Shown piece by piece: positions 11,104-24,504 of a stretch of DNA of 64,000 bases (its first letter is position 1; every line of letters begins with the position of its first letter). The notes under the pieces are model-generated. The model had not been told where the DNA came from and made no database searches. It saw nothing but the letters and a program-made list of their open reading frames with translations. The DNA is taken from sequence record MZ501268.1. One strand, 5' to 3'. The position numbers and the translations under genes were made by a program.

Positions 11104-12234
11104 ATGCAGTATAGTACTTTTAACACCACCAAGAATGATCAGCTGGCAGAACCCATGTTTCTGGGGCAATCAGTTAATGTCAGCCGTTATGACCAACAAA
11201 AATACCCTATCTTTGAGCAATTGATAGAGAAACAATTGTCGTTCTTCTGGCGACCTGAAGAGGTTGACGTCTCTAAAGACCGTATTGACTTCCAGGGTTT
11301 ACCGGATCACGAGAAACATATCTTTGTTTCTAACCTGAAGTATCAAACGTTGCTGGACTCCATTCAGGGTCGTTCACCAAACGTGGCGTTGCTGCCGATC
11401 TGTTCTATCCCGGAACTCGAAACCTGGATCGAAACCTGGTCGTTCTCTGAGACCATCCACTCACGTTCGTATACCCACATCATCCGTAACATCTTTACTG
11501 ATCCAAGTATTGTGTTTGATGACATCGTGACTAACGAACACATCAAAGCCCGTGCCGAGTCAGTCACTGAGTACTACGACCAGTTGATCGAACTGACCAT
11601 GTACTACAACCTGCTGGGCGAAGGCACACACAGCGTCAACGGTAAGAAAGTTGAAGTGTCACTGCGTGCACTGAAACGTCTGCTGTATTTGTGTGTCGTG
11701 TCAGTCAACGTACTGGAAGCCATCCGCTTCTATGTCTCGTTTGCCTGCTCGTTCGCATTTGCAGAACGTGAACTGATGGAAGGTAACGCAAAGCTCATTA
11801 AGATGATCGCGCGTGATGAAGCCCTGCACTTGACTGGCACCCAACACATGATCATGCTGCTGAAGTCTGGCGCTGATGATGCCGAGATGGCCGAGATCGT
11901 TAAAGAGTGTGAAGCAGAAACATACGCACTCTTTAAAGACGCTGCAGAGCAAGAGAAAGACTGGGCGGGTTATCTGTTCCAAGATGGTTCGATGATTGGT
12001 CTGAACAAAGAGATCGTGTGCCAGTACATCGAATACATCACCAACATTCGTCTGCGCGCTATCGGTCTGGATGTTATCTATAAGACCAATGCTAACCCAA
12101 TTCCATGGATCAATTCCTGGTTGGTCTCTGACAACGTGCAACAGGCGCCTCAAGAATCTGAGATTACATCCTACCTGGTAGGTCAGATCGATTCAACGGT
12201 CGAAAAAGATGCATTCGACGATTTCCAACTGTAA
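11104..12234 (+). CDS. nrdB: class Ia ribonucleotide reductase beta subunit
   Basis: Close to enterobacterial NrdB: [62 protein letters not shown]. Confidence 0.97.
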
Positions 12235-21174: not shown

Positions 21175-21900
21175 ATGACGCTGAAGAGTAATAAACAATT
21201 AAATGCTGAAACCCCTGAGCTGCGTGACCTGGTCATTGTTATCGACGGGTTAAATGTCCTGGACCTGAATCTGGCACCGGGTGCCCGTGCAGCGCGTTAT
21301 AGCGTCCAACTGTCAGGCGACATGGGATTGACTCCAAACAACAAACGTGCGGTGTATGGTCATGCCGCCCAGCTGTTAAATGCACTCCTGGAGAGAGGGT
21401 TCTCTGCACATGCAAACGTATCACGTGACGATCTGGATAATGACGTTGCGCGTGCAACTGAACTCATGCAGCAAGCGGTCAACCTGCTGATCGAAACCGG
21501 TGAAGACGTTATGGTGCGCTGTCACTCACTGTCTATCTCGGTGACTACTGTTGATTTCAACTTGACTGGGGTGCAGGTCATCAGCGATGAGGCGATGGAT
21601 AAAGTCGAGTTCCTGTTGGCGCAACCTGCAGAACCATCTGAAGCACTGGCCCAGCTGCTTGGGTGTAAAAACCAGAGTTGTATGATTAACAACGAGCTGC
21701 ATGTACGCCGTGAGTTCGCGAATGAATACGGCGATGTGATCATTGTGTGGATGCCGATCGATCTTAATCAAGATATCCTGCACACCGGCGATGTGGATAA
21801 AACTAAACTCAGCTTCCATGGCGACGCGTCAGACGGTAAACCAACCTTTATCATCAACCGCTATGCAGTTAAAGGTAATACCGACCAGTCACCAGTGTAG
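21175..21900 (+). CDS. hypothetical protein with an internal DUF1778/TacA-like segment
   Basis: RBS AAGGA; VISDEAMDKVEFLLAQPAEPSEALAQLL. Confidence 0.55.
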   Translation: MTLKSNKQLNAETPELRDLVIVIDGLNVLDLNLAPGARAARYSVQLSGDMGLTPNNKRAVYGHAAQLLNALLERGFSAHANVSRDDLDNDVARATELMQQAVNLLIETGEDVMVRCHSLSISVTTVDFNLTGVQVISDEAMDKVEFLLAQPAEPSEALAQLLGCKNQSCMINNELHVRREFANEYGDVIIVWMPIDLNQDILHTGDVDKTKLSFHGDASDGKPTFIINRYAVKGNTDQSPV

Positions 21901-21934
21901 TAATTAAATAATAGACAGTGTAATCATATGCGAT

Positions 21935-21975
21935 AAGGGGGTCTGGTGAAAGCCATATCCCTTTTGGTTATGCTG
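21935..21975 (+). terminator. hairpin + TTATGCTG terminator
   Basis: AAGGGG..TGG-TGAAAG-CCA..CCCTT, then GGTTATGCTGTC and a long T-run. Confidence 0.65.
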
Positions 21976-22070
21976 TCTTTTTTTTTGTTTTTAAAAACTA
22001 GCGGCCACCATTATATGCAATTTACACGACACACTTTTTCATTTGACACACTTAGCAAGAGAGATAAGCA

Positions 22071-22214
22071 ATGAGCCAACCTGAAGAATTTGATTTGGAC
22101 GCACTGGGCGAACTGGACCTGGACAGCGCTGAGAAAGCAGCAGAAGCGAAAGGTGCCCTGGGTGGCGAAGCTATCGCTGATGGCGAAGCTGACTGCGAAG
22201 GCTGCAAGATCTAA
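22071..22214 (+). CDS. 47-aa acidic peptide ending in DCEGCKI (NrdA C-terminal-tail-like)
   Basis: Hand-translated MSQPEEFDLDALGELDLDSAEKAAEAKGALGGEAIADGEADCEGCKI; purine-rich AAGAGAG upstream; highly expressed-type codons; not in the ORF track. Confidence 0.75.
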   Translation: MSQPEEFDLDALGELDLDSAEKAAEAKGALGGEAIADGEADCEGCKI

Positions 22215-22240
22215 ATGCCGTGATGTGAACCGGGTCTGAT

Positions 22241-22588
22241 ATGGGATCAGTTAACCGAGGAAACATCATGAACATTTATCTTGTCAAACGTACCGACGAA
22301 GTCATGCGCAATGAATTCAGTTCTTTTCTGGTAGTTGCACATTCTGCAACTGAGGCGAAGACTATTCACCCGCACTATCACTGGAACAGTTCAGCTAAGA
22401 AGACCGACGATGATTTCACTATTGTTGAGTGGGGTGCCGACATGGCAAAATACTGGCAACGTGAATCAATCCGTTGTTCATCTGAGTGGACACTGGATAT
22501 GGATAAAATAAATCCTATCTATTTAGGGCAGGCTGGCGTTGAATTCACACGCCCTACTATCCTTGCATGTTCGTACGAAGACTTCTAA
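22241..22588 (+). CDS. hypothetical phage protein
   Basis: Likely start ATG 22268 after RBS GAGGA; MNIYLVKRTD..FLVVAHSATEAK. Confidence 0.65.
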   Translation: MGSVNRGNIMNIYLVKRTDEVMRNEFSSFLVVAHSATEAKTIHPHYHWNSSAKKTDDDFTIVEWGADMAKYWQRESIRCSSEWTLDMDKINPIYLGQAGVEFTRPTILACSYEDF

Positions 22589-22594
22589 CATATC

Positions 22595-22623
22595 AGGCGT
22601 CCTTCGGGGCGCCTTTATGCCGG
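22595..22623 (+). terminator. hairpin + TTATGCCG terminator
   Basis: AGGCGTCC-TTCG-GGGCGCCT, then TTATGCCGG. Confidence 0.8.
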
Positions 22624-22666: not shown

Positions 22667-23152
22667 ATGTTGGAAATAATAATGCTTACCGGCGGTGCAT
22701 CTGAGCCAGCGAGCGGTAATGTGCCTTTAACTCCTACCCAACAGTGGGTGTCTACAGTAACGCGTGATGTAACCTTTACGCTACTAGGACCAGGTGGTGG
22801 TGCCGGCGGCTCTACGGGTACTTATGCCGGGGGTAGTGGTGGCAACGGCGGAAAGGTCAGTGTTGTTAAAACCGTCAAGCGGGGTGATGTGATTTCCTTT
22901 ACAGGTGGCACAGGCGGTGTTGGTGGTAGTAGTTCAAGTAACGGTGGTAACGGCACGCCGCTGGTATTGGTGATTAACAACGTTGCACAGGAATCAGCAC
23001 CCGGAGGTGGTGGCGGTAGCGGGAGTCGAAATAGCTTAGCGGGTTCTGCAGGATCAAATGGTGGGAATGGACTGGGTGCTAAAGGCGGGACAGGTTCTAA
23101 AGGGTCTGCGGGTAACAGCGGGGCCAAAGGATCAGCGACGATCACATGGTAA
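22667..23152 (+). CDS. glycine-rich putative virion/tail-fibre-like protein (MLE family)
   Basis: Starts MLEIIMLTGG; polyglycine-type GGGAGG repeats; RBS GGAG. Confidence 0.65.
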   Translation: MLEIIMLTGGASEPASGNVPLTPTQQWVSTVTRDVTFTLLGPGGGAGGSTGTYAGGSGGNGGKVSVVKTVKRGDVISFTGGTGGVGGSSSSNGGNGTPLVLVINNVAQESAPGGGGGSGSRNSLAGSAGSNGGNGLGAKGGTGSKGSAGNSGAKGSATITW

Positions 23153-23898: not shown

Positions 23899-24504
23899 AT
23901 GTTAGAAATGATGCTTGGTGGTAAACCCGCTGCGACAGGAGGTCAACAACTCTTTACAACTGCCGGTACATTCAGTTTCATCGTACCCAATGGCGTCACC
24001 CTACTGGATACGTATAACCAGGGTGGTGGAGGTGGGGGTGGTAATGGTAACTCATCAACGTATAAAGGGTCCAACGGGATTCCCGGAAGAGTTGGTGCAC
24101 CTGCTTATGTAAACGACATCCCTGTCACACCTGGTGAGACATTAACCATTGTAGTGGGTGCAGGCGGTGCGTTGGTTACTGCAGGCGAGGCGACTCAGTT
24201 GTTACGGGGTAGTACTGTGCTAGCAACCGCCCCAGGTGGGGCTGCGGGGGCGAATTCTGGTTCTGTTGGTAGCAGTGAGAACAACGTGGGTGTCGCAGGC
24301 ACTGCCGCAACAACCATTCCTGGAAATACAACAACTTACACAGCAACAAACAAACGACCTGGATCTTCAGGAAATGGTGGAGCTGGCTATTCCAACGGCA
24401 GTGGTAAGTTAAGCGCAACTGCAGGTATTGCTGGCGGTCTACGATTGATGTGGGGTAATGGACGTGATTATCCTGCAACGGGTGTGGCTGATGTAAAGAT
24501 GTAA
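23899..24504 (+). CDS. glycine-rich putative virion/tail-fibre-like protein (MLE family)
   Basis: Starts MLEMMLGG; QQLFTTAGTFSFIVPNGVT, GGGGGGG, GGLRLMWG. Confidence 0.7.
   Translation: MLEMMLGGKPAATGGQQLFTTAGTFSFIVPNGVTLLDTYNQGGGGGGGNGNSSTYKGSNGIPGRVGAPAYVNDIPVTPGETLTIVVGAGGALVTAGEATQLLRGSTVLATAPGGAAGANSGSVGSSENNVGVAGTAATTIPGNTTTYTATNKRPGSSGNGGAGYSNGSGKLSATAGIAGGLRLMWGNGRDYPATGVADVKM

Follow-up and report, generated by a model that had tools for sequence, protein, structure and literature searches.

Of the class I ribonucleotide reductase (RNR) cycle, the step carried out by the C-terminal Cys-pair tail is understood least, and this flexible tail is rarely seen in structures. From work by Zhang et al. 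in 2007 the NrdA tail is said to act between subunits, and every description of the Cys-pair tail that we are aware of has it within the alpha subunit. The tail is reduced by thioredoxin or glutaredoxin and in turn reduces the active-site disulfide (PMC9669993, PMC6382339). CXXC is the commonest arrangement of its cysteines among class I RNRs, and CXXXXC, as in E. coli, is found in a minority (PMC9669993). RNR function can also be divided between separate polypeptides, as in the split class II enzyme NrdJa/NrdJb and other split RNR genes (PMC9669993). The RNR alpha redox tail itself and split RNRs are already known; what appears to be new from the sequence comparisons below is the tail motif as a separate gene product, in a family without a described function. 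Small regulators of RNR are represented by yeast Sml1 and by Spd1/Hug1-type proteins, which are largely disordered and act on the large subunit; Sml1 is eukaryotic and its function has been shown experimentally. To our knowledge, Sml1 itself carries no Cys-pair tail. According to PMC6382339, which cites Zhang et al. 2007 on this point, Sml1 interferes with the regeneration of the active site by the C-terminal CX2C tail of R1.

The stretch of DNA analysed here (the window, 64 kb) comprises bases 62001-126000 of MZ501268.1, the 275,293-bp genome of Erwinia phage AH06 (genus Agricanvirus; host Erwinia billingiae), to which positions 21900-22600 were 100% identical. AH06 encodes chimallin (Pfam PF25677), a phiKZ-type major capsid protein and a tubulin-like protein, which together indicated a nucleus-forming jumbo phage. 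An initial annotation of the window had described a 47-aa acidic ORF with optimal codons that ends in ...DGEADCEGCKI, and had compared it to the redox tail of NrdA. The ORF was present as described, starts with ATG and is annotated in MZ501268.1 as gene 115 (AH06_115), a hypothetical protein. Its predicted product has a pI of 4.05, with 14 Asp and Glu residues against 3 Lys and Arg. The remark on its codons also held, since the codon adaptation of AH06_115 to the long ORFs of the phage was above that of 36 of the 37 long ORFs of the window. In an AlphaFold2 model, which is indicative as it was built on a shallow alignment of four sequences (mean pLDDT 63), residues 9-30 were predicted to form a helix, and residues 31-47 were non-helical, without secondary structure and of low confidence, with pLDDT below 50 over residues 31-40. 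No match to AH06_115 was obtained in Pfam, NCBIfam or the PDB sequences. The features of the locus and of related fused proteins were collected in Table 1.

Table 1. Features at and around AH06_115, and phage proteins that carry the same module at their C-terminal end
Feature	Position	Strand	Remark
Hairpin and T-run after gene 114	hairpin ~21935-21964; T-run 21978-21992	+	terminator-like; kept in relatives
Upstream block with TATG (22014-22017)	21997-22024	+	candidate phiKZ-type phage RNA polymerase promoter
Purine-rich Shine-Dalgarno-like tract	22057-22064	+	7-14 nt 5' of the ATG; read from the sequence
AH06_115 (gene 115)	22071-22214, including stop	+	47-aa acidic protein; phrog_10239 member
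AH06_115 residues 1-30	22071-22160	+	acidic N-terminal part; predicted helix over 9-30
AH06_115 residues 31-47	22161-22211	+	Gly-rich linker, then low-confidence acidic tail
DCEGCKI, last seven residues, with Cys42/Cys45	22191-22211	+	same as some class Ia NrdA ends
nrdB, class Ia, host-like	11104-12234	+	Pfam Ribonuc_red_sm, E 6e-52; only RNR gene of AH06
Fused module, Erwinia phage Yoloswag	L019 9680-10120		146 aa; N-terminal part without Pfam match
Fused module, Erwinia phage pEa_SNUABM_5	L240 7498-8124		208 aa; N-terminal part without Pfam match
Fused module, Wellington	L239 5901-6128		75 aa; N-terminal part without Pfam match

The conservation of AH06_115 was evaluated in related phages. 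A full-length copy of 47 codons was found by tblastn in all 16 other Agricanvirus records with 74.5% identity (17 of 17 records with AH06), and the copy of Ea35-70 is annotated with a later start as a 39-aa protein. AH06_115 matched phrog_10239, a PHROG to which no function is assigned, at E 8.7e-21, with residues 1-47 on profile positions 1-47. The constraint was distributed unevenly along the protein. When 11 phage copies were compared, the final 7 codons showed synonymous differences only, and the N-terminal half was variable, with F7, L12, L15, E21 and K27 kept among relatives. When 21 phage and bacterial members were aligned, six columns were invariant (M1, D41, C42, G44, C45 and I47), and F7, E21, E43 and K46 were kept in at least 90% of the members. 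As judged from these alignments, the tail is the most constrained part of AH06_115, and the pattern of substitutions showed AH06_115 to be a real gene under protein-level constraint.

The C-terminal end was then compared with the ends of NrdA proteins. E. coli NrdA ends in ...DDGCESGACKI, and the same end was found in five Erwinia NrdA and in most of 120 enterobacterial NrdA. AH06_115 has the Cys-Glu start and the Cys-Lys-Ile end in common with it, with 2 residues between the cysteines instead of 4. The seven residues DCEGCKI are the exact end of the annotated NrdA of Pantoea phage Phynn and Citrobacter phage Margaery and also of NrdA ORFs on five viral contigs (L020, L062, L070, L081 and L107), which bore out the proposed resemblance, and close variants end the NrdA of Erwinia phage pEa_SNUABM_47, Shigella phage Sf25 and Cronobacter phage 009. 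Cys spacings of 2 and 4 both occur among NrdA tails. The family variants P0014 and P0016 have 3 or 4 residues between the cysteines and keep the Lys/Ser-Ile end. The similarity is limited to about 7-15 residues, and neither BLASTP against E. coli NrdA nor phmmer detected the likeness of the tail.

The seven terminal residues were back-translated, followed by a stop codon, and this pattern was scanned in a viral collection and in the genomes of 185,579 species. A total of 92 viral matches were obtained and classified: 5 C-terminal ends of true NrdA genes, whose products align with E. coli NrdA up to residue 761 at 47-60% identity and which have nrdB after them, about 21 members of the peptide family, 7 ends of Gp49_66-type proteins (two of them confirmed against PF13876), 2 other fusions and 57 copies of one repeated ORF. 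This last, non-acidic ORF (L023 6839-7240 (+) and 56 similar viral loci) was rejected as a family member; the copy examined, in L023, lies antisense to a prophage gene with a KilA-N domain, so that it was regarded as a chance match multiplied by the copies of one prophage gene. Among the first 120 matches listed from the species genomes, about 115 were family genes and 1 was NrdA, against about 6 expected by chance, which is our own rough estimate for seven residues and a stop codon. DCEGCKI is, on this comparison of ends, a genuine variant of the NrdA tail beyond a loose resemblance, since NrdA proteins with identical ends exist and CXXC is the commonest arrangement among class I RNRs. AH06_115 and the NrdA redox tail have in common an acidic flexible segment, two cysteines that are spaced by 2-4 residues and lie in the final ten positions (Cys42 and Cys45 of 47 in AH06_115) and Lys-Ile at the carboxyl end. 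In contrast to NrdA, AH06_115 is a separate, free-standing gene product in a genome without nrdA, with no attached RNR catalytic barrel (Ribonuc_red_lgC) and no Pfam domain, and was not filed as NrdA for this reason. It also has an acidic helical N-terminal part of its own with a conserved Phe/Leu pattern, to which no part of NrdA corresponds. A thioredoxin fold, as in Trx, Grx or NrdH, was not recognised in AH06_115 either, which at 47 aa consists of the predicted helix and the low-confidence tail and matched no Pfam family. The C-terminal tails of E. coli and phage NrdB were read against the N-terminal part of AH06_115 as well; few residues were shared and no likeness is claimed.

The module is not confined to Agricanvirus. 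A profile search of 1.84 billion representatives recovered free-standing peptides of 44-64 aa and proteins of 90-221 aa in which the module forms the C-terminal end. A profile of the family detected 198 clusters, including one from E. amylovora, and found AH06_115 at E 3.4e-12. A chromosomal homologue of about 43 aa was detected, among the matches listed, in at least about 115 genomes with one gene per genome, in Erwinia, Pantoea, Serratia, Rahnella, Hafnia, Budvicia, Sodalis, Tatumella and relatives (Enterobacterales). The bacterial genes and the phage peptides align over their whole length, and the 21 aligned members, AH06_115 among them, have the same architecture of an N-terminal acidic Phe/Leu motif, an Ala/Glu/Lys helix, a linker and the invariant tail. 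The linker differs, being Gly-Gly-Gly-Glu in phage copies and Pro-containing in bacterial copies. With the same N-terminal motif, linker and tail, phrog_10239, the bacterial 43-aa proteins and AH06_115 were considered a true family, which spans plant-associated Enterobacterales and at least six phage lineages. One entry, P0201, a 715-aa protein amid a cluster of 43-aa proteins, was discarded as a clustering artefact.

The usual annotation of bacterial members is "hypothetical protein". A few carry the name "Conjugal transfer protein TraD" in UniRef, which no Pfam or NCBIfam match supports. A family name or function was not found in the libraries and literature searched, and a full-text literature search for the six-letter tail motif returned no paper. 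The gene follows yedI (DUF808) in 62 of the 120 bacterial loci listed (L112-L231; e.g. L165 5082-5210 (-)). E. coli yodC, which takes the same position downstream of yedI, and E. coli ypaB, which adjoins nrdA, were both tried as homologues and proved unrelated. When 5,426 E. coli genomes were searched by blastn with the ORF, only a chance match of 24 nt was obtained and no copy at the DNA level. The sampled NrdA of Erwinia, Pantoea and Serratia, genera with the chromosomal homologue, keep their tail. Among phages, Pantoea phage PSKM (49.9 kb) carries a 41-aa member and no RNR gene. Some N4 Gp49/Sf6 gp66-type phage proteins have an acidic stretch and the same seven-residue tail; L056 1913-2266 (-) and L047 1753-2106 (+) are the two that were checked against PF13876, a family of unknown function, and further examples lie on L075, L087, L096, L097 and L101.

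The peptide gene is located amid nucleotide-metabolism genes in four jumbo-phage lineages. The neighbours are nrdB, MazG, thymidine kinase and DHFR in AH06, thymidylate synthase and MazG in Wellington, dCMP deaminase and thymidylate synthase in pEa_SNUABM_5, and thymidine kinase on contig L010. As a link to RNR these neighbourhoods are suggestive only, because jumbo genomes cluster such genes among many unknowns. In the annotation of AH06, thymidylate synthase is divided into two CDS that flank an HNH homing endonuclease gene (L005 45027-47021; genome 57027-59021), a locus outside the window.

Given the likeness of the tail, the reading that we favour, at a confidence somewhat short of even, is that AH06_115 may be a trans-acting analogue of the NrdA tail which engages the thioredoxin/glutaredoxin–NrdA reduction chain of the host. 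The initial annotation had offered this as its second idea, in the form of a diffusible peptide that acts on host NrdA or on thioredoxin. The end DCEGCKI with its stop codon is the same as that of real NrdA proteins which align with E. coli NrdA to the last residue and are followed by nrdB; the host NrdA tail CESGACKI is close to it, and the variants in Cys spacing retain the Lys/Ser-Ile end. The tail is the most constrained part of the protein and was predicted to be non-helical with low confidence, as expected of a flexible arm. The excess of family and NrdA matches over the chance expectation among the matches listed, and the nucleotide-metabolism neighbours in the four jumbo-phage lineages, also speak for this reading. 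No thioredoxin or glutaredoxin motif was recognised in the annotated genes of AH06, so that any redox partner would be the host's; a redoxin encoded by the phage was rejected, as the motif scan matched only two short ORFs on the strand opposite to annotated genes. AH06_115 would combine a helical, acidic N-terminal half with a flexible tail that copies the redox tail of the class Ia RNR alpha subunit. The dithiol of the Cys pair would be recognised by the partners of the NrdA tail, both the host thioredoxin or glutaredoxin and the active-site cysteine pair of the host NrdA. In a phage that has NrdB only and relies on the host NrdA, AH06_115 may then tune RNR turnover during infection, and an activating effect, an inhibitory effect and a decoy effect on the redoxins would all be compatible with the proposal. 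We infer every step of this mechanism from the comparisons above.

Several results speak against this reading. The similarity to NrdA is short and was missed by BLASTP and phmmer, nothing in NrdA corresponds to the N-terminal motif, and the bacterial homologue lies away from nrd genes, downstream of yedI in about half of the listed loci. As the NrdA of the hosts keep their own tail, it is not evident why another should be needed, and a general docking tag would account just as well for the fusion of the module to unrelated domains (Gp49_66). A wider proposal, which we regard as possible but doubtful, is that the Erwinia-Pantoea-Serratia group and many phages use a dedicated trans-acting copy of the RNR alpha tail, as a protein or as a tag, that would compete with or substitute for the NrdA tail and set the rate of class Ia re-reduction, and that NrdB-only or RNR-less phages would use it to take over the dNTP synthesis of the host. 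If true, this would constitute a layer of RNR control in bacteria and viruses with a logic comparable to that of eukaryotic Sml1. AH06_115 resembles Sml1 in being small and largely disordered, and action on the large subunit is proposed here for AH06_115 as well; the two differ in that no sequence relationship was recognised (no Pfam hit).

A conserved, separately encoded copy of the tail would offer an unexpected handle on the control of active-site re-reduction and would bear on how NrdB-only or RNR-less phages exploit the host enzyme. It also offers a name and a testable idea for a PHROG and for "hypothetical proteins" that currently have neither. Even if the link to RNR fails, there is a clear seven-residue C-terminal motif common to an essential enzyme and small phage proteins.

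Two alternatives keep the Cys pair as the functional site. AH06_115 might be a general thiol-disulfide small protein or a thioredoxin/glutaredoxin decoy, that is, a mimic of redoxin substrates that diverts or senses reducing power with no action on NrdA. The NrdA-identical end would serve such a protein just as it serves the favoured reading, the acidic composition is like that of redoxin substrates, and members are found in an RNR-less phage and, in bacteria, away from nrd genes; the neighbourhoods in the four jumbo-phage lineages point more to RNR, and we judge this alternative rather unlikely.

Similarly improbable in our judgement is that the CxxC forms a metal-binding or structural site, for example for Zn or Fe shared by two chains, and that the likeness to NrdA is convergent. 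The protein has no cysteines beyond these two, their CxxC arrangement is typical of metal ligands, a strongly acidic protein could bind cations, and the module is fused to unrelated N-terminal domains, all of which would suit such a site. However, convergence would have to yield the whole run of seven residues at the extreme C-terminus, Glu, Gly, Lys and Ile among them, together with the NrdA-like spread of Cys spacings, and the number of motif occurrences found is far above the chance expectation.

The module might also be a short linear motif that serves as a portable docking tag at the C-terminus and would bring different cargo domains to some other host hub which also reads the C-terminus of NrdA, such as a chaperone or protease adaptor. 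The module ends proteins of 44-221 aa with unrelated N-terminal parts, and the seven Gp49_66-type tails, two of them checked by Pfam, belong here too. Most family members, however, are the module alone with no cargo, and we know of no such host hub for NrdA tails, so that we consider a docking tag quite improbable. A RiPP precursor, with an acidic leader ending in Gly-Gly and a Cys-containing core, would be in keeping with the small size, the acidic N-terminal part, the GG before the C-terminal segment and the two cysteines. Its conservation would be opposite to that of most RiPPs, with an invariant "core" and a variable "leader", no maturase-like domain was found in the neighbouring genes, which are themselves not conserved, and the bacterial copies lack GG and adjoin yedI; a RiPP is therefore very improbable.

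The main idea of the initial annotation was a split RNR, in which AH06_115 supplies the tail to a tail-less phage NrdA, and it did not survive the search for that subunit. It drew on the tail motif and on the nrdB reported at 11104, which proved genuine. A tblastn search of the whole AH06 genome with the NrdA of E. coli, Phynn and Margaery gave no nrdA (best E 0.2, with NrdB found at 77%), and the annotation of AH06 lists the beta subunit only. In split RNRs such as NrdJa/NrdJb both alpha pieces are present, whereas AH06 has no alpha piece. With no phage NrdA the idea is refuted for AH06, and the occurrence of the family in RNR-less PSKM and in bacterial genera whose sampled NrdA keep the tail further reduces its probability to practically nothing. 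The nrdB of AH06 is 77% identical to E. coli nrdB at the protein level and 73.5% at the DNA level, and neither nrdA nor yfaE is present in the phage genome. Equally host-like NrdB genes were observed in jumbo phages OBP, PCH45, Kc263, pEt-SU, AH04 and others, and also in 52-kb phiEcoM-GJ1-like phages.

That AH06_115 is a chance open frame and no gene, as its shortness and the simple scans, which gave no same-strand promoter and no terminator, might suggest, is already refuted at the level of sequence evidence and virtually without probability, for 17 of 17 Agricanvirus records keep the ORF, its tail codons change only synonymously, its homologues fill 198 clusters and its codon adaptation is high.

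The signals upstream of AH06_115 were examined in the same way. A terminator had been claimed before the ORF, and this was sustained in part: a conserved hairpin of 12 bp followed by a T-run is present after gene 114 (folding z = -2.1; 7 of 200 shuffles folded equally well), and a simple terminator scan made no call there, so that the hairpin and T-run are a plausible terminator. The claimed TATG was found at its place, and the block around it did not vary in five relatives. Late promoters of the phiKZ non-virion RNA polymerase contain TATG, the G of which is the start site, and this motif is necessary and not sufficient (PMC4666361). The upstream motif was not repeated in the window and TATATG was not enriched there, for which reason the promoter class cannot be claimed; a phiKZ-type promoter upstream of AH06_115 is a candidate by way of suggestion only. 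A sigma-70 scan of the upstream region gave nothing on the + strand.

The C-terminal part of gene 114 varies among relatives and gene 116 has no counterpart in them, which excluded gene 116 as a conserved downstream partner. With neither flank conserved, the conserved unit consists of the hairpin, the upstream block and the peptide gene, and from this comparison it behaves like a self-contained cassette. Over positions 21900-22290, the hairpin, the upstream block, AH06_115 and about 75 nt downstream were about 86% identical in relatives. Just downstream, two glycine-rich proteins are encoded at 22667-23152 and 23899-24504 (+), both of which match minor-tail-protein PHROGs. The first of them also matches Pfam Gly_rich_2 (PF21722), and a 209-aa Pro/Ala/Glu-rich protein is encoded between the two.
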